Source of the DNA: Rebecca billardiae RCC1528
Taxonomy: Eukaryota > Protista > Haptophyta
Direction of reading: 5' to 3'
DNA length: 64,000 nucleotides
Assembly (NCBI GenBank): GCA_965240325.2
Contig: OZ251243.1
Coordinates: 310,001 to 374,000, forward strand
Shown in pieces: positions 37,662-47,178 of this stretch (position 1 is its first letter; every line of letters starts with the position of its first letter). The notes below the pieces were generated by a model. The model was not told where the DNA came from. It ran no database searches and saw nothing but the letters and a program-made list of their open reading frames with translations. Made by a program: the position numbers and the translations under genes.

Positions 37662-39872
37662 TCACACCGGCGGCGGCGGCGCAGCCTCGCCAGGCTCACC
37701 CGCACCAGGCAGCGCCGCCGGCTCGGTGCTGTACCCGCTCCGCTCTGCTCCCACTGTCACTGAGTCCCAGCCGCAAGCAGCGGGCGAGCCGGCGGCCGCG
37801 GCCGCCGCCGCCGGCCGCGGCGGGCTCTGCTCACCGCTGCCACTCGGACCGTAGCCGTTGTCACCGCCGTGCCCGTTCAGTGTCACCGCCGAGCTGCGCC
37901 GGCTGAGGGCCTCCTCCGCCGCGCGCTCCTCGAGCCCCTCGGGGCTGCGCGCGTGCGCCATCTGCTCCCACAGCGCGAGCCACTGCGCGTACTCAGCCTC
38001 GTCGTACACGCCCTCCGCCGTCTCGCGCTGCGCCTCGTGGAGCTCGCGCTCGGCGGCACTCAGCTGCTGCAGCCGCGAGGGCGGGAGGCGCGGCCGCGGC
38101 GCGCGCGGCTCCGCACCGCCGCCTTGCGACTGAGGCAGCACGGCCGCGTCCGCGCCGCGGTCGGTGGCCGCGTCGGGGCCGCGGGCCGCGGGACCCACGG
38201 GGGCGCGCGCTTCGTCAGGCTTGATGTGGCCAGCTGCCGAATCGCCGCGCGCCGCCGCGGCCACCGCCTCGGCCAGACCGGCGCCGCCCGAGCGCGCGGC
38301 CTCGGCGGCGGGCAGGGCTGCGCTTGTGCCGCTGGCGCGCGCAGCGACGGGTGGCATGGGTTCGGCCTCGCCCGCCGCGCCTCCCTCGCCCTCCGGCCTG
38401 GTGGGCCCCGCGAGCGCAGGCTGCGCCGAGCCCTCTGGTGGCGGCGCCCCAGCTTCAACTGCCGAGCTGTCTGCATGCGCGGCTGCGCCTGCTGAGACGG
38501 GCGCTGCCGCAAGCGCGTGGGCCGCGGCCGCGGCCTCCGCCACCTCGCCCGCCGGCGCCGCCGCCCACTCGCCGAGGCACGCAGCGACGTCGGCGTCGGT
38601 GGGCGCGCGCAGCCGCCGCACCGCGTCACGCAGCCGCGCCGAGCCCGCCCCCTCAGCCAGCCCAACCGCCGCCTCATACCGGCTGTCCGCGCGCACGGCC
38701 GCCGCCGCGGCCGCCACACCCGGGACAGCGGCAGGGTCGCCCGCGAACGCGGCGGCGGCGGCGAGAAGGTCGGCGGCGGAGTCGAGGACGAGCGCGGGCG
38801 GCGGCGGGCGCGCGCGCACCGCGGCTGCCCCGCCGCCCTCGCGCCCGCCCGCCTCGTCGTCGCCCAGCGCCCGCGCCCCGAGGCCACCCAGCGAGATGCG
38901 CTCATAGTCCGCCACCATCTCCGCAGCCGCCTGCGCCGCCGCGCGCGCGTCCACAAGCGCGCGCAGGCTGACGAGCTGCCGCGCCCAGCTGCGCGCGGCG
39001 CCGTCGTCGGCGGCGAGCAGCGCCTCGCGCGTGCGCCGGGAGAGCGTCTCGAGCTGCCGCGCGTAGCTCAGGCTCGCCTCCTGCAGCGCGCTCACGACGC
39101 CGTCGAGCGCCTCGCCGAGCGCTGAGGTAGGAGGAAGCGGCGGCTGCGGCCGCGGCCGCGACGCAGCCGGCTGCGCGGGCGCCGCCGCCGCGCCGCCGCT
39201 CGTGCCGCAGGCAGCGGGCGCCTCCGCGCCCAGCCGCGCGGGCACGCCCTCCCGCTCCGCCCGCGCGCGCGCCCAGCCCTCCTCGAGGAACGGCTGGTAG
39301 TCGAGCGCAAGGAACGCGGCGAGCTGCGTCGCGCACGCGGCGAGCGCGCCCGGCCCGAGCACGCGCGCGCACGCGTCCACGGCGGAGTGGAGGACGGCCT
39401 GCAGCTCGGCGCGCGCGCGCGCGTGGGAGGCGCCGCGCGGTGCTCCGCCCGAGCCCAGCGCGCGGCCGGGCCAGACCACGCCGCGCTCCGCGCACAGCGC
39501 GCGCAGCCGCTCGTCCAGCGCGGCAAACTCTGCCCACGGGTGTGTCGCGATGAAGCCGCGCCGACGGGCCTGCGTCGCGACCTGGAAGACGCGGTGCGCG
39601 ACGCCGCGCGCGTCGTGCTCCTCAAACACGTCGGTCACGCGCACACGCACGCCGCTCGCGTCCGCGAGCGTGCAGAGCGCGTGCGCGTCCTGCTCGGCGC
39701 GCGGCCCGCCGTCCTCTCGGCCGAGCGAGCGCGTCAGGCCCTGGAGGGCGGTCGCCGCGCGGCCCGCGGCGGCACTGGCCGTGCCCACCGCGCTGCCGAG
39801 CACCGCCGACGCGCGCCCCGGCTCGCCGACGCGCCGCCGCAGCCTGTCGAACGACGAGGCGCGCTTGATCAT
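37662..39872 (-). CDS. PX-domain protein with IST1-like helical region
   Basis: PX-like RVFQVAT...HPWAEFAALDERL...LAAFLALD; IST1-like REALLAADDGAARSWARQLV. Confidence 0.45.
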   Translation of the reverse strand: MIKRASSFDRLRRRVGEPGRASAVLGSAVGTASAAAGRAATALQGLTRSLGREDGGPRAEQDAHALCTLADASGVRVRVTDVFEEHDARGVAHRVFQVATQARRRGFIATHPWAEFAALDERLRALCAERGVVWPGRALGSGGAPRGASHARARAELQAVLHSAVDACARVLGPGALAACATQLAAFLALDYQPFLEEGWARARAEREGVPARLGAEAPAACGTSGGAAAAPAQPAASRPRPQPPLPPTSALGEALDGVVSALQEASLSYARQLETLSRRTREALLAADDGAARSWARQLVSLRALVDARAAAQAAAEMVADYERISLGGLGARALGDDEAGGREGGGAAAVRARPPPPALVLDSAADLLAAAAAFAGDPAAVPGVAAAAAAVRADSRYEAAVGLAEGAGSARLRDAVRRLRAPTDADVAACLGEWAAAPAGEVAEAAAAAHALAAAPVSAGAAAHADSSAVEAGAPPPEGSAQPALAGPTRPEGEGGAAGEAEPMPPVAARASGTSAALPAAEAARSGGAGLAEAVAAAARGDSAAGHIKPDEARAPVGPAARGPDAATDRGADAAVLPQSQGGGAEPRAPRPRLPPSRLQQLSAAERELHEAQRETAEGVYDEAEYAQWLALWEQMAHARSPEGLEERAAEEALSRRSSAVTLNGHGGDNGYGPSGSGEQSPPRPAAAAAAAGSPAACGWDSVTVGAERSGYSTEPAALPGAGEPGEAAPPPPV

Positions 39873-40004
39873 TGCGGCGGCGGCGGCTGCGAACGGCCGA
39901 GCGCCAAGCGGAAGGCGGAAGCCCTGCCCTTGCGTTTGCAAGCCGCCCTCTCGATCGGGATCGATCTGCTGGGCGTGGCCGTCTTGATTCCTGACGAGCG
40001 AGCC

Positions 40005-40463
40005 ATGGCCGCGACCAGGCGGATCGCCGCGCTGCGCCCGGCTCACGTGGACACGCTCACCGAGTGGTTCAAGCAGCAGTGGTGGTCGAGCTCGCCACCC
40101 CGCGGGCGCGCCGACGTGGAGGTGATGCTCAAGCACTCGATCGTCCTCGCGTTCGAGGACGAGCACTCGAGCGAGCTCGCCGCGTTTGGGCGCGCGATCA
40201 GCGACCGCGCGTTCAAGGCGCTCATCCTCGACGTGATCGTCGCGCCGGAGCGCAGGCGAAGCGGGCTGGGCCAGGCGGTCGTGCAGGCCGCGCTGGAGCA
40301 CGAGGAGCTCGCGCGCGTGCGCCACATAGAGCTGTACTGTGCCCCGGACATGGTGCCATACTACGAGCGGCAGCACTGGCAGCGGCTGGACCCGGAGCTC
40401 GCCTTCATGCGCCTGGACGACGGCGCCGTGCCATGGCGGTATCAGGGGCCACGCGGTGAGTAG
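40005..40463 (+). CDS. GNAT-family N-acetyltransferase
   Basis: FGRAISDRAFKALILDVIVAPERRRSGLG (motif A) and HIELYC..DMVPYYE. Confidence 0.88.
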   Translation: MAATRRIAALRPAHVDTLTEWFKQQWWSSSPPRGRADVEVMLKHSIVLAFEDEHSSELAAFGRAISDRAFKALILDVIVAPERRRSGLGQAVVQAALEHEELARVRHIELYCAPDMVPYYERQHWQRLDPELAFMRLDDGAVPWRYQGPRGE

Positions 40464-40676
40464 CCTTCCACGGCACGCCAGCTGCTCTCGGCCACACTCC
40501 CGGCCGAGGCCATCCTGACTCCGGGCAGCGCTTGCGTGCCCCGCGGTCCGGATCTGCGCCCGGCGGCTGGCAATTGGCATTGCCAATATGGGCAAGTCAC
40601 TCTGAGTCTGACTCACCCGTCGGCGTCACCGTCGTCCGTCTCACCGCCAAGTGGCGTCAGGCCACGACTTCATACA

Positions 40677-40677
<1 letters not shown>

Positions 40678-40745
<68 letters not shown>
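40678..40745. repeat. (TA)n microsatellite
   Basis: About 33 uninterrupted TA units between convergent genes. Confidence 0.97.
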
Positions 40746-40837: not shown

Positions 40838-43800
40838 TCACCGCTCCAGCACGGAGTGCACTGACTCTGCAGCCTCTGGCGACGCCGATGACGCCGTAGT
40901 CGAGCGCACCTCGCGCAGCGCCGCCGGGCCCGGCGGCGGCCCTGGGTGTGCAGCACCGGCCCCGCGATGGCTCGCAGTCTCAGCCTCGGCTTCATCCGCC
41001 GCCGGGGCGCCGCCACGCTTGGGCGCCGGCAGCGGCGGCTGATCGAGCCGCTCGACCGCTCGCTCGCTGCCGTCGTCAGACTCGGAGCTCTTGCGCATGC
41101 CCAGCAGCCCGACCTCGCGCGCCCGGCGCCGGCTCGCCTCTGCGGGCGAGCTGGGCGCAGACGCGGCGAGGTTGGGCGGGCTGAGCTCGCCCGGCAGGGC
41201 CAGGTGGCGCATCGAGCCGCTCGCCGGCGCGCCGCGCGCGTCCGCATGCGCCGCGCCGCGCCGCCAGCTGAAGCCGCCCGACGCGCTCCACGCGCCCGCG
41301 CCCGACGGCGATGGCGCAGACTCATTGCGCGCGATAGCCGGCGGCGAGTGCATCTGTTGCTGCTGCTGCACGAGGCCGCTTGCCGCGCCGGCGGCGCTGT
41401 CCGGGCCGCTGTGCCGCAGCGCGTTGGAGGAGGACGCGGCCCAGCGGTCGCGCAGCCGGCCGAGCGGGCTCGGCTGCGCGGTCGGTGCGCCTCCACCGCC
41501 GCCGCCCGCGGCCGCGTTGCTCTGGGACTGCTCAAACGCCCACGTGAACGCGGCGAGGGCGCGGTGCACCTCAGAGTGTACGGTCACGTTGAACGCCTCG
41601 ACCGCCTTCTCCGAGGAGCCGCCCGCGTCCGGCGCGACGCGCGCGCGCTTCATCCCGAACGGCGCGCGCGGCCCGCCCCGCGCGCCGCCGCCGCCGCCCA
41701 CGCTCAGCAGCTCGGCCAGAAACGGCAGCGCGCCCGCGGCAACGCGCGCCGCGCCGCCCGACTGCGTCTCGTCACGCGAGCCGGCAAACTCTCGCTCGAT
41801 CAGCTCAAAGATCATGCGCCGGTCCGCCTCGACCGAGGCCTGCGCGTTGCGCGCGTCGAAGGCGACCAGCGCGGCCTCCACGCCCTCGCGGTCTCGGCGC
41901 AGCGCGCGCACCAGCGCCGACGCCTCGGCGGGCGCGAGCGTCAGATGCAGTGCCGCCGCGCGCTGCTGCCCCAGCTTACTCGATAGCCGGCCGCTGCCGC
42001 CGCCGCCGCCTTCGAAGCTGCCGCCGGTGGCGCTGCCGCCGGCGCCGCCCGCCGCCGAGCGCCGCCCGCTCCCCGCCCTCCGCTCGCGCACGCACTGCAT
42101 CAGCTCGTACAGGCACCACGCGCGCGTGAGCGCCACCGGCGCATCCCACGGGTCGAGCACCATCACCAACGTGCCGATCTCGCGCACAATCTCGCCGATG
42201 AAGCGCACGTCTGCGGAGACGTCCATCTGCCGGATGGAGAAGACTGCGGGAGGGGCGTGTGGGCGCGCGTGTGCGCGTGCGCACGCGGGCACCGACGACG
42301 ACGCGGGAGGGGGGGGGGGGCGCGTGCTCAGCACGCACGCACGCGCGCACCCGCCGCCCGCGCGCTCGCGCGCCGCGCGCTCGGAGGCTCCCGCGCGCGC
42401 CGCGCGCAGAGGCGAGCACCGTCGATCCAGCAGTACATCTGGGCGAGCTCGAGCTCGTGCCGCGCGGCGTGCGCCTCGAGCGCGTCGAGCAGCTTGACGA
42501 ACGAGCACGCCTGCGCGTGGCTCACGAACAGCGTCGCGCGCCGCACGGCGGGCAGCCCAGCCGACGAGGTCGAACCCAGCGACTGCTCGGCGTAGGAGAG
42601 GCCGCTCGAAGCGGTGAGCGCGCGCAGGTGCTGGCCGACGGCGGCGCTGGTCGCGTCGGCGTCGACGCCGTGCGCGGCGGCGAAGTCGCGCAGCGCCGCG
42701 TACGAGACGCCGAGCAGCCGGCGCACCTCGATCCCCTCCCGCAGCGAGCTCTTGCGGCTGCCGCGCGCGCCGCGTCCGCCCGGCCCGCGGCCGCTGTGTC
42801 TCGACGGCCGCGTGACGCGGATCTGACCGCTGAGCAGCGCGCCGAGGCCCGAGCTCGCGGTGCTCCTCGGCGTGGCCACCGACTCGGCGTAGATGCTGGG
42901 CAGCCCGGGCGAGCGCATCCGCACCGACGCCCCCGCGTCCGACTGCCCCGAGCCGCGCCGCGACCCCGCCGACGAGCGCGTGCGGCGTGAGGCACGCGTG
43001 TCGGTTGACGCGCGCGAGCCGCGCGAGCTCGGCACGTGCGAGGTGACTTGTGACGAGTGCGGCGTGGGGCGCGAGGAGGCGAAGAGGGAGGGCTGCGACG
43101 AGGCGTTCTCGGAGGAGGACGGCGGCACCGGCCCGGGCGAGCTCTGCCCGCTCGTCCGCACCGACGACAGCCTGCGCCGGCCCCTCCCGGCCGCGCGCGC
43201 ACACGCCTCTGCCGCCACGCGCAGCGGAAGCCTCACCACGCGCACGCCTACTGGGCGGAACGCTTCGATCTGCGCATAGGAGACGACGCCGTGCGCCGTG
43301 GCGGTCCACGCGGCGAGCAGCGCGCGCCGGGTCGGGCCGAAGTGCAGGTACGCCGGCGCCGCGCCGAGCGCGAGGCACACGCTGCCCGCCATCGTCAGCT
43401 TGAGGATGGCGAGCAGCCGACGCAGCACGGGCGGCGGGAGCACCGCGCCGAGATGCAATCTCGTGCGCCGCAGCAGCCGCGCGGCGAGGAGGGTGGAGAC
43501 GCAGTGCTGCACGAAGGGGAGCACGACGAGGAAGAGGGTGAGGCTGAGCAGGCCCGTCGCCACGCGCATCGCGCCGAAGAACGAGCCGAGCACCGCGAGC
43601 ACCGCCACCGCGCACGCGCCGCCCACGCCGCGCGGGTGTGCCATCTGTGAGATGTGTCCGGGCGCAATGCCTGCCGACTGCGTGGCCGCCTCGAAGTAGG
43701 AGAAGAAGAGGAGGGAGGTGACGGTGCACAGCGGCGTGACCAGCGCGCCGAGCAGGTACGACGCGGACACGGGAAGCACGCCCGTCGACTGCAGCGGGTC

Positions 43801-44634
43801 GAGCGCCACCTCCGCCAGCCGCAGCACGTTCAGACTCAGCTCGCTGAAAAGAATCACGTTGGCCACAGTGACGTGCGCGCCACCATCGAGTCGAATGTAC
43901 GCGTGCAGGCGGCAGAGGGCGAGCTCGAGGGCGGCGAGGGCCTGCAGCCCGACGAACGCGCGCAGCAGCGCGAACCACGCCGAGCGCCACAGCACCTGCC
44001 ACGCGCTCAGCTCCGACGCCGTGTGCGTGACGCGCGCGCGCACCGCGGCCGCGCGCGCCGCGCCGCCGCCGCCGCCGCCGTCCGCGCGCTCGCGCGCGTC
44101 GGCGCGGAGCAGCGCGTCGACGAGCGGCAGCGCGGCGGGCTGGGCGAGGTGGAGCGCGGGCGGGGACTCCAGCCAGCGCGCGTCGCCCGCCGCCCAGAAG
44201 TGCCGCGCCTGCCCAGGCACCTGGTCAAAGTGGCGCGTGAACGCGAGCGGAAAGTGAGCCCACAGGAGCGCGCCGCGCGCGCCCGCGGCGCGCGCGTGCT
44301 GCTCGTGGCTGCAGAGCGCCCAGTTCGCGTCGAGGTGCACGACGATCGCCCCCGCGAGCGAGCCGTTGCCCACGTACGCCGGCGGGCACCCCGCGTCGTA
44401 CGACCACGCCTCGCGCCGCGTGACGACAACGCGCCCGGACACGTCAAACTCGACGGGCGAGAACGCCTGCTCGGCGGCGACGAGCTCGAGGCCGACGAGG
44501 GACGGCGGGCCGTGCGTCACGACAAAGGCCCCCCGCGCGCGCCCGAGGGCGAGCAGCACCGCCGCGACCGCGCCGCGCGCGCGCGCGCGCCGGGGGGGTG
44601 GTCGCGGCGGGGCGGGGTCCCGTTGGCCCCGCAT
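40838..44634 (-). CDS. Putative receptor: signal peptide, PA-like domain, 7 TM helices, cytosolic TIR/HET-like domain; intron 42244-42419
   Basis: PA-like LAGAIVV..CSHEQHARAAGARGALL, seven hydrophobic segments, then ATLFVSHAQ..F..LL.AL, YCWIDVFSIRQ and VLDPWDAPVALTRAWCLYE. Confidence 0.7.
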
Positions 44635-45071
44635 TGCGACCCCTCCACCTCGGCGACTCCGAGAGAGAATCGCCGGAGACAACGGCGGCAACGACGACGG
44701 AGGGCGGGCGGCGCCGCGACGGGTGAAGAGCTACTGGCTATTCATCAGATTCAGTCATCAGTGCTCGAATCAGTGATGAATAAAGAGTACTTAAACTTGT
44801 AAACGAGAATGGACCCGGACGTTACTCATCAGCAGCCTGACGACTGACGACTTGATAGAACTACTTACTACTCCCGAGGCGATTTCGATGACGACGACCG
44901 TGATATGATGGAGGTGACGACTTCCCACGATATGATGATGACCGTCAAAAATGCCTGCAGGCAACGCCAACAGCTCGGATCTGCGTCAGCAGGTGCACGC
45001 AGAGAGGGCCGAGTGGAAGACGTGCACAGCGCATGCGCTGCCCGAGCTGCGGCACTCGAACAAGCTCCGTC

Positions 45072-47178
45072 TCACGCTCCGCCGCTCGTGGGGCCGTCGT
45101 CGACGGCGGTCGGCGCGATGGCGACCGGCGCGACGGGCGGCGGCGGTACCGTCACCTCGGCGGGAGGCGGCATGGGCGGCAGCGTCGGGCTGGCGGCTCG
45201 GCCCGAGACGGGCGTCGTGGCGCCGTCGGGGGGCACGTCGCCGTCCACGTCCGCTGCGGCGAGGGCCAGCGGCATGCCCAGCGCGGGCGGCTCCTGCTGC
45301 ACGTCCGAATACGAAAAACCGCTGGCGAGCCTGCGCACGCGCGCCGCGGGCCGCGGGCACGGCGCGCGCGCAGGAGAGAGAGAGGAAAGGCGGCGGCGGC
45401 GCATCGCGTGAGCCCGGCACGCTCGCTTGGTCGTGTGGGGAGCACGCGCCCACGCGCGCGCGCGCGCAGCCCGCCCTTCGGCCTGCACGGCGCTTGGCCT
45501 CCGCGCCTGCGCGCGCGCGCCGCCTGCGCCGCCCGCCTGGCCCTGCAAGCCAGCAGCCATCCTGCCGTCTCGTCGCACCCACCCTCGCCCTCCGCTCCCC
45601 CAGCTCTCCCGCACAGAGGGGCCCGCACCTGTACTCGAGCACGAGCTGCCGCTCGTCCGAGAGATACTCCTGCAGGATGGAGCCCAGGCTGAGGTCGAGC
45701 ATCAGAGAGGGCGGCGGCGGCGGCCGGCCGGCCGTGCCCTCCGTGAGGCGCAGGGAGAGCCTGAACGACGTCCATGCGGACTCCTTGAGCTGCAGCCGGA
45801 GCACGAGGAACTTGAGCACGTGGTGCACCTGCGGTGTGTGTGTGTGTGTGTGTGGCGGGGGAGGAGGCGGGCGGCACGCGGCAGGCGCGGAGGCGGGGCA
45901 GTGAGCGGGCAGGCGGCAGGCGGCGGGCAGCAGGCAGCGGGGGCAGCCGCAGCCGCAGGCAGCGGGGCAGGCAGCAGGCGGCGGGCAGCAGCAGGCAGCG
46001 GGGCAGCGGGCAGACAGCAGGCGGCCGCTCAGCGCGGAGGCCGCGCAAAGCCTCGCAGAGAGCAGGCGCTGCCTCAACGCCTCCGGCGGGCTCTGCCATG
46101 CCGCGCCGCGCGCGCACGCCGGCGCCGCCCGCACCTGCAGCCGGCGCGAGGTCTGCAGCACCTCCTTCTCCAGGTCGCCGAGGAACACCTCCTCCGGGTG
46201 CCGCACCACGGCGAAGGTGACGGAGTCCGGGGCCGCCTCGGTGCCCGCGAGCGCGGGCGCGTGTTGGTCCGAGGCGGCGGCGTGCGCGGGGCGCGGGCGC
46301 TTGCGCTTGCCCGAGCGCGGCGGCGCCGGCCGGCCCGGCGCCGGCTGGAGCAGCGCGTCCGCGCCCTCGTCCTCGTCCGTCAGCTCCTCCTCCTCGCCGC
46401 CGCGCGGCCGGCGGCCCGCGGCCGCCGCCTTCAGTGCAAGTCTTTTGGTGCGCACGGCGGCCTGCGCGCGGAGGATGCGCTCGCGCTGCTGCTTGGCGGC
46501 GAGCTCGCGCTCGTACTCCTCGAGCTCGTGGCGCGAGCGCGCCGCGAGCTGCTCCGCCTGCTTGTGCAGCTGCTCCTCGTGCGCCAGCCGCCGCCTCTCC
46601 AGCTCGCCGTAATTGTCGAGGCACGAGTATTGCTCCAGCTCAAAACCCTCGAGGTCGGGCAGCAGCGCGGCGATGAGCCGGTCGAAGTTGGCGTCGGGGC
46701 GGAGCGAGCGCCGCGTCGCCACGTGCCGCCTGCACGACGGGCACTCCTGCGCGCCGCGCGCGCGCCGGCGAGCGCGTGCGTGCGCGCGTGCGCGCGTGAG
46801 CGAGCGAGCGCCGGGCGCGCGGGGGGAGCCGAGCGCGCTGGCGGCGCGTGCGCGCACCTTCTTGCCCTGGCGCAGGCACTTCTCGATGCAGTTGTGGCAG
46901 AAGCGATGCAGGCACTCCGTCGCCACGGCGTTCTTGAGGATGCTGCGCGCGGCGCCCGCCCGAGGCGCGCGTCAGCGCGGCGTGGCGCACTGCGCGCCTC
47001 GCGCCGCGCCCGCGCGCGCGCACCCTAGGCAGACCGGGCACGAGAGGTCGGCGGCGAGGCTGCTCACGGGGAGCGAGGTCTCGTCCTCCTCATCGCAGAT
47101 GATCGGGTACGGCGCGTCGGCCCCCACGCGCACTTCGCCAGGCCCATGGCGGGCCATCACCGACGAGTGCCTCAGCAT
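45072..47178 (-). CDS. RING1: RING1-type E3 ligase (PRC1) with RAWUL-like domain; introns 46943-47023, 46747-46857, 45829-46134, 45331-45628
   Basis: Spliced [61 protein letters not shown]. C-terminal LQTS..LQVHHVLKFL...LVLEYR. Confidence 0.88.

Follow-up and report, generated by a model that had tools for sequence, protein, structure and literature searches.

In a 64,000-nucleotide stretch of DNA from the haptophyte Rebecca billardiae RCC1528 (contig OZ251243.1, positions 310,001 to 374,000 of the forward strand; hereafter, the window, in whose numbering positions are given unless a contig is named), we studied a minus-strand gene whose predicted product joins a PA-like ectodomain, a seven-helix membrane core and a cytosolic module related to TIR and HET domains (Table 1). 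From the open frames and the sequence itself, we found that the gene consists of two exons, exon 1 (44634-42420) and exon 2 (42243-40838), which encode one predicted membrane protein. The local base composition is 70-80% G+C. The first open frame spans 44691 to 42328, its first ATG lies at 44634, and exon 1 comprises 738 codons plus one base. The second frame, also on the minus strand, contains VFSIRQ...WCLYE and ends in a TGA stop codon at 40838-40840; exon 2 contributes 467 residues and, with the split codon, the predicted spliced product has 1,206 residues.

Table 1. Features of the receptor gene in the window
Feature	Coordinates	Strand	Basis
Start codon and signal-peptide-like segment, residues 1-35, with hydrophobic helix at residues 16-29	44530..44634	-	First ATG of the frame; helix in the model
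PA-like alpha/beta ectodomain, residues 36-205	44020..44529	-	pLDDT >90; Foldseek, atlas and sub-threshold Pfam signals
Seven-helix membrane core, GPCR fold, residues 213-457	43264..43998	-	
Ser/Arg/Gly-rich low-complexity cytosolic linker, residues 471-637	42724..43224	-	Composition
Cytosolic module, first half: helical sub-domain (RRLLGV...), FVSHAQ, YCWID; ends in the split codon	42420..42723	-	Family alignment
Phase-1 intron splitting the module between WID and VFSIRQ	42244..42419	-	Sequence, family alignment
Module, second half: (V)FSIRQ, DPWDAPVALTRAWCLYE, FDARNAQAS, C-terminal helix EAFNVTVH...FTWAF	41534..42243	-	Family alignment
Ala/Gly/Ser/Pro-rich C-terminal tail, about 230 residues, predicted coding, with TGA	40838..41533	-	

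The intron is 176 nt long, begins with GT (42419-42418), ends with AG (42245-42244) and is rich in pyrimidines at its 3' end. On the minus strand, the junction reads 5' to 3' ...TGG ATC GAC G/GT...CAG/TC TTC TCC ATC, so that the split codon is GTC (Val), and the predicted junction 42420/42243 joins ...TGGATCGACG to TCTTCTCCATC. The unspliced frame would stop at about 42328, some 30 codons past WID; read-through of the intron meets this stop so soon that the conserved module can gain its second half only by splicing. The exon pieces align with 15 relatives, and the junction falls exactly between WID and FSIRQ without gaps on either side, in support of the splice model and of a single protein that contains the two halves. 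In the closest paralogues on contigs C32 and C19, an insertion falls exactly where this copy has its intron, and 12 other paralogues are continuous there. The canonical GT..AG ends and the register of the exon pieces with the family agree with the intron that a preliminary description of this DNA had proposed. The motifs claimed in the same description (FVSHAQ, WID, FSIRQ and WCLYE) were likewise found on the minus strand, with FVSHAQ at 42511-42528, YCWID at 42421-42435, (V)FSIRQ at 42227-42243, and DPWDAPVALTRAWCLYE at 42104-42154, where the Glu codon of WCLYE is GAG (42104-42106).

Two low-complexity inserts interrupt the second half of the module in this copy. The C-terminal tail has no counterpart in the family: the homologues P0001 and P0002 from Diacronema lutheri and P0003 from Pavlovales sp. 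CCMP2436, which are 750-800 residues long and have the parts in the same order without low-complexity inserts, stop directly after the ..SW helix. The P0001 frame (2,295 nt) nearly fills a 2,333-nt contig, as might be expected of a transcript assembly.

We searched the 72-Mb, 41-contig assembly of the same genome, in which the window corresponds to contig C26, 310001-374000, with each half of the protein. Residues 1-470 of exon 1 (the N-module) gave 61 matching stretches at 58 loci, and the 180 residues at the start of exon 2 gave 98 matching stretches at about 60 loci. At 48 of the 58 N-module loci, the same strand carries the module no more than 4.5 kb further downstream; no downstream module was detected at the other 10, and 12 module loci had no N-module. 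Many paralogues carry both parts in an unbroken frame 850-1,500 codons long, in which 76-77 residues separate FxSH from RxWCxxE, and in at least 12 paralogues both parts, or a continuous module, lie in a single open frame. One of the intronless paralogues lies at C16:1981977-1984244. The three closest paralogues (on C20, C32 and C19, with 55-60% identity) have the same layout as this copy. By part, identity among the paralogues is 46-50% in the module, 37% in the ectodomain and 29% in the membrane core. Each half has a family of more than 50 loci in the genome, and their association is not due to chance. The fusion is real at the family level, and the design is expanded roughly 50-fold in this genome. 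Thus, the earlier claim that the two halves are joined in one protein is borne out at the family level by the intronless paralogues and by the homologues from other organisms.

It might still be argued that this particular copy does not encode a working fusion and that it represents two transcription units, or a decaying paralogue disabled by its inserts and intron. The gene model is predicted, and this copy has a 167-residue linker, two inserts in the module and a tail of about 230 residues that the compact relatives do not have. However, the frame is open across 1,206 codons, the splice sites are canonical, the near-invariant residues of the family are all kept where the exon pieces cover them, the layout is common to the three closest paralogues, and no start or promoter-like break lies between the halves. 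Neither half of the module is complete alone, because the intron sits inside the domain. We therefore regard a non-working copy as very improbable.

Some loci in the assembly carry one part only. PA-seven-helix loci without a module, for example C14:660012-660782 and C1:5045185-5046048, may bear another or a very divergent output domain. On C19 (about 1197858-1203974; L056 1859-7975, minus strand), a 2,038-codon frame, one of the 12 module loci of this kind, has the module without the PA-seven-helix part and matches no Pfam family.

The N-terminal part (residues 1-470) was modelled with AlphaFold from an alignment of 24 sequences, with a mean predicted local distance difference test score (pLDDT) of 88.2 and a predicted template-modelling score (pTM) of 0.84. 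In this model, residues 16-29 form an N-terminal hydrophobic helix, residues 36-205 an alpha/beta ectodomain, and seven long helices lie between residues 219 and 457. Hydrophobicity peaks at about residue 30 in the signal-peptide-like segment, and the homologues P0001 and P0003 begin with short, typical signal peptides at the equivalent position of the alignment, in agreement with the signal peptide previously claimed.

The ectodomain has the conserved motifs CPP.YVG, L.GAIVVH and C..E.HAR.AGA.GA. Its Foldseek matches were the PA-type ectodomains of ZNRF3 (8xfs_E and 4c9u_C; template-modelling score (TM-score) by target 0.52-0.60, E-value 3e-3 to 9e-3), and by the language-model features of a structure atlas the nearest clusters were PA clusters (0.86). 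PA was also the only recurrent Pfam family among the 24 N-modules, nine of which matched it weakly (best E-value 1.7e-4). This copy scored 10.8 bits against PA (PF02225; E-value 0.58) and the Diacronema member P0012 scored 20.3 bits, both under the cut-off of 23.9 bits. The ectodomain is PA-like, as had been proposed, and falls short of a proven PA domain; four weak signals, from structure, features and hidden Markov models (HMMs), concur.

For the membrane part, all of the top 50 fold matches were proteins with the fold of G-protein-coupled receptors (GPCRs). A reading of the protein as signal-peptide-peptidase-like (a PA domain with a multi-spanning protease) was rejected on account of these same 50 matches. 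Arg and Lys residues are clustered at the cytosolic ends of transmembrane helices TM1, TM5, TM6 and TM7, which fits an N-out, C-in topology with the module facing the cytosol. Thus, the model and the charge pattern together indicate seven helices in the GPCR arrangement and a tail inside the cell, as the preliminary description had read them. No Pfam family of the 7tm type was matched at E-values up to 1 by either exon, by six paralogues or by the 24 N-modules, and the class A motifs (DRY, CWxP and NPxxY) are missing from the residues conserved in the N-module family alignment. By eye, TM3 ends in ...FSYFEAATQ and TM7 reads ...VVSYAQIEAFRP. The disordered linker that follows, described before as Ser/Arg-rich, contains 39 Ser and 29 Arg among the 170 residues from 471 to 640; its length differs between paralogues, and it is short in P0001-P0003.

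A scan of the genome for G-alpha gave partial matches only, with one locus above the cut-off when these were summed, and a scan for RGS domains gave several loci, none of which was tied to the receptor gene. Some of the RGS matches are repeated within giant open frames of 8,009, 12,933 and 13,615 codons (C3:3527936-3545083 and C8:1519727-1592133, both on the minus strand); those on C3 comprise at least 10 copies at a spacing of about 1.9 kb.

The module was modelled on an intronless paralogue, L024, whose identity to this copy's exon pieces is 45% and 56%. In the model (pLDDT 96.0, pTM 0.92), an alpha/beta core lies between a small helical sub-domain at the N-terminus (residues 1-55) and helices at the C-terminus; within the first half of the module, a strand (residues 5-7) and helices (residues 9-48) are followed, in the TIR-like core, by strand A, helix A and strand B. 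The predicted fold of L024 is the flavodoxin-like alpha/beta fold of TIR domains. When this model was used for the Foldseek comparison that had been proposed for the C-terminal domain, the top rows were the TIR domains of RPS4, SARM1, RPPT, RPV1 and AbTir, and no match reached an E-value of 1e-3.

In an alignment of 114 members of the module family, a single column is invariant, namely the Glu of WCLxE (E149, 114/114). Residues conserved in at least 90% of the members are H70 (FVSH), W100 and D102 (WxD), P134 and W135 (DPW), and R143, W145 and C146 (RxWC), and this copy retains every near-invariant residue covered by its two aligned exon pieces. When hhalign was used to compare the module profile with nine canonical TIR_2 domains encoded in this genome, 85 columns were aligned (P 4.7e-4) and the invariant Glu was placed on the invariant Glu. 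From this alignment and the 114/114 invariance, the residue is a candidate catalytic Glu, located after strand C in a context of the WxxxE type. The best PDB chain for the module profile was a TIR domain from the bacterium Paracoccus (3h16, E-value 0.11), in which FVSHAW...WxD..F was aligned.

Profile searches placed the module between TIR and HET. In Pfam at E-values up to 1, HET matched 13 of the 114 members (best E-value 2.4e-4) and TIR_2 matched five (best E-value 7.5e-3); these were the sole recurrent families, and the other 36 matched one member each. The weak HET matches lie on the WLD..IRQ block (profile positions 36-75), and the RxWCLxE block resembles, as judged by eye, the third block of HET (R-x-W-x-x-Q-E). 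Scores against HET (PF06985) were 12.2 bits for L024 (E-value 0.23) and 13.7 bits for P0001 (E-value 0.08), with a cut-off of 22.5 bits. No HET domain above the cut-off was obtained in a six-frame scan of the genome, and the Pfam TIR models (PF01582 and PF13676) matched neither exon and none of six full paralogues, even at E-values up to 1. TIR_2 was above its cut-off at 10 or more other loci of the genome, none of them a member of the receptor family. Canonical TIR_2 domains also occur there as tandem pairs in single open frames (C5:1949398-1950210, minus strand, and C13:1545244-1546164, plus strand).

Other searches were less informative. This copy reached none of the Pfam thresholds for TIR, HET, PA or 7tm; the sole Pfam row for the exons and six paralogues was a chance match to Phage_Gp84 (E-value 0.13), and PADLOC gave no match in six proteins. 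A PDB sequence search with a 17-sequence profile gave only a chance TPR-protein row. The atlas feature search with the module gave uninformative scores of up to 0.78 for named clusters. The word-index search with the 114-sequence profile gave nine matches, none of them labelled TIR or HET, and that with exon 1 gave no match, probably because low-complexity words swamped the search. Taken together, these results place the module in the TIR/HET superfamily, as a divergent branch outside the coverage of Pfam, and make it a formal member of neither Pfam family; the TIR/HET-like tail of the preliminary description holds in that sense, with a TIR-like fold in the model and a sequence between TIR and HET.

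The fold matches also bear on whether the protein might be a conventional G-protein-coupled or transport-like membrane protein whose module is a nucleoside- or nucleotide-metabolising enzyme or regulator of the deoxyribosyltransferase type, with no immune-type signalling. TIR domains consistently ranked above transferases, the sequence profiles indicate TIR and HET only, and about 50 diversifying paralogues, some apparently near each other on one contig, would be unusual for a metabolic enzyme. On the membrane side, as noted above, class A motifs and matches to a 7tm Pfam family are both missing. We consider this explanation improbable.

The module profile was then compared with 1.84 billion cluster representatives, of which 6,819 matched at E-values up to 1e-3 and 3,784 at E-values up to 1e-10. 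The N-module was also present in about 30 of the best 150 module matches, and the named ones among these were all from Diacronema. Most other matches had the module at the N-terminus, followed by TPR arrays of the KLC type (8 of 10 sampled); Salpingoeca rosetta and a chytrid provide named examples. In the structure atlas, the whole 250-residue module was found in unnamed clusters (TM-score 0.82-0.86 over 231-236 residues), for which the commonest phyla recorded were Oomycota, Haptophyta and Chlorophyta, and a weaker match (TM-score 0.53) was to a cluster from Ascomycota. The sampled matches and the atlas clusters thus confirm the earlier statement that this module usually precedes TPR arrays. 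A domain-restricted protein search gave four proteins, including hypothetical proteins from Diacronema lutheri (KFE25_014115) and Pavlovales sp. CCMP2436. Two Diacronema members are named 'Heterokaryon incompatibility domain-containing' in UniRef; apart from such automatic UniRef names, the database members are labelled hypothetical. The genome of Diacronema lutheri has a G+C content of 73% (PMC8379373), which makes a pavlovophyte the most likely source of the G+C-rich window. Another protein of this species with the PA, seven-helix and module parts, P0039 (KFE25_010880), is named 'RGS domain-containing' in UniRef, and no Pfam RGS match was obtained for it at E-values up to 0.1.

On the basis of this architecture, we propose, with a probability of about 0.55, that the gene encodes a single-chain surface receptor whose cytosolic TIR/HET-like module signals by Glu-dependent cleavage of a nucleotide. 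SARM1 and the TIR domains of plants and bacteria cleave NAD+ or related nucleotides by means of a conserved Glu. In the proposed receptor, the ectodomain or the pocket of the seven-helix core would sense a ligand, and the resulting shift in conformation or clustering would switch on the cytosolic module. By analogy with NADase-type TIR domains, the invariant Glu of WCLYE, a WxxxE motif, might then cleave NAD+ or a related nucleotide, and the outcome would be a small-molecule signal or the depletion of NAD+. Such a receptor would work in place of G proteins or alongside them, as a one-component counterpart of Toll-like receptors on a seven-helix scaffold, and may serve non-self or environmental sensing. 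Ligand sensing, catalysis and the biological role are what we infer here beyond the gene model, the folds, the topology and the fusion described above.

Several points weigh against this proposal. Many TIR domains act as scaffolds and not as enzymes. The module model was built on L024 and not on this gene, the hhalign probability for the alignment with TIR_2 was only 32%, and the Pfam, PADLOC and PDB sequence searches yielded nothing significant for this copy. The receptor may also still couple to G proteins; the genome has RGS domains and one weak G-alpha-like locus. As of 2023, HET domains had no proven activity as enzymes (PMC10197012).

The main alternative gives the module a non-catalytic role in assembly or as an adaptor, in which it would recruit other carriers of the module homotypically, as the TIR domains of animal TLRs and MyD88 do; the abundant module-TPR proteins would then be natural partners. 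However, one Glu is strictly invariant in a WxxxE context over 114 divergent members, which is typical of a catalytic residue, and it aligns to the catalytic Glu of TIR domains. The best structural matches, moreover, are NADase-type TIR domains (SARM1, RUN1, RPP1 and AbTir), and catalysis and scaffolding can coexist. We therefore judge a purely adaptor role to be unlikely and retain the nucleotide-cleaving receptor as the preferred reading. More tentatively, the nucleotide-cleaving receptor may be extended to the pavlovophytes as a group: they would possess a so far undescribed class of one-component receptors in which a PA and GPCR-fold sensor directly gates a TIR/HET enzyme that cleaves NAD+ or nucleotides, some 50 diversifying paralogues would serve at the cell surface as a repertoire for recognising non-self or pathogens, in the manner of Toll-like receptors but with seven helices, and the module-TPR proteins would be a cytosolic arm found across protists.

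Near the gene, an open frame on the plus strand at 39387-40463 ends, as read by eye, in a stretch like a GNAT acetyltransferase (...VIVAPERRRSGLGQAVV...). A long (TA)n microsatellite at 40675-40745 lies about 100-160 bp downstream of the stop codon of the receptor gene, in an AT-richer spacer before the next gene. The frame of the upstream neighbour (44986-46926, minus strand) begins, again as read by eye, with a RING-finger-like CxxC...CPSC arrangement (CLHRFCHNCIEKCL...ECPSCRRHV).

Immune signalling by TIR domains is common to bacteria, plants and animals. Haptophytes rank among the major primary producers of the sea and have important viruses, and, to our knowledge, almost nothing is known about non-self sensing in protist algae. 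If the proposal is true, a seven-transmembrane (7TM) protein wired directly to a TIR/HET module would connect sensing at the cell surface in a new way with cell death or with signalling by nucleotides, and haptophytes would gain a concrete, testable repertoire of candidate receptors. The analysis also brings out a large family missing from Pfam (the 6,819 cluster representatives), with an invariant Glu and a position between TIR and HET, which could help decide whether HET-like domains are enzymes.

Among known systems, receptors of the Toll-like type consist of an ectodomain, a membrane anchor and a cytosolic TIR domain. Like the Toll-like and IL-1 receptors, the protein studied here has a putative binding domain outside, a membrane span and an output from the TIR superfamily, and the structural matches of its module include TIR domains from MyD88, IL-18Rbeta and Hydra TRR-2. 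Unlike them, it has seven helices of the GPCR fold in place of one and a PA-like ectodomain in place of leucine-rich repeats or immunoglobulin domains, and its output misses the TIR models of Pfam and is closer to HET by HMM score. Compared with NADase-type TIR domains (SARM1, RUN1/RPP1/RPS4, AbTir, SpbK, ThsB and SPARTA), the module is only 10-18% identical and, at 250 residues, has an extra N-terminal helical sub-domain and additional C-terminal helices.

HET proteins are soluble, fungal and often nucleotide-binding leucine-rich repeat receptors (NLRs). The W-I/L-D..x.I.Q and R.W..xE blocks of the module resemble those of fungal HET domains, and HET was its commonest weak Pfam match (13/114); however, no match above the Pfam cut-off for HET was obtained, this gene and its paralogues included. 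The structural matches comprised no solved HET structure. HET is a remote relative of TIR and has been reported in Haptophyceae too (PMC4986451).

The oomycete GPCR-bigrams and plant 7TM-RGS1 likewise link a 7TM receptor covalently to a domain in the cytosol that is catalytic or regulatory, and for the bigrams a short circuit of G-protein signalling has been proposed (PMC6033456). However, these proteins have no PA ectodomain and belong to different lineages, and the catalogued partners of the bigrams are only PIPK, INPP, AC, PDE and TKL, none of them of the TIR/HET type. The ectodomains of ZNRF3 bind protein ligands, and among the PA-TM-RING ligases ZNRF3 and RNF43, those of ZNRF3 are the best structural matches of the ectodomain; the likeness is weak, and ZNRF3 has a single transmembrane helix and a RING output. 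The module-TPR proteins of protists (for example, Salpingoeca rosetta PTSG_02686, 'Mbre TPR repeat protein', and clusters from oomycetes, haptophytes and chytrids) have the same 250-residue module, with E-values down to 1e-40, but there the module is N-terminal and soluble, without a membrane part.

In the literature searched, we found no description of a fusion between a 7TM or GPCR protein and a TIR or HET domain; a survey of choanoflagellate GPCRs from 2025 mentions neither TIR nor HET, and the PA-7TM-TIR/HET design matches no curated family that we found. What is new is an architecture that combines known folds, together with an unannotated branch of the TIR/HET superfamily.

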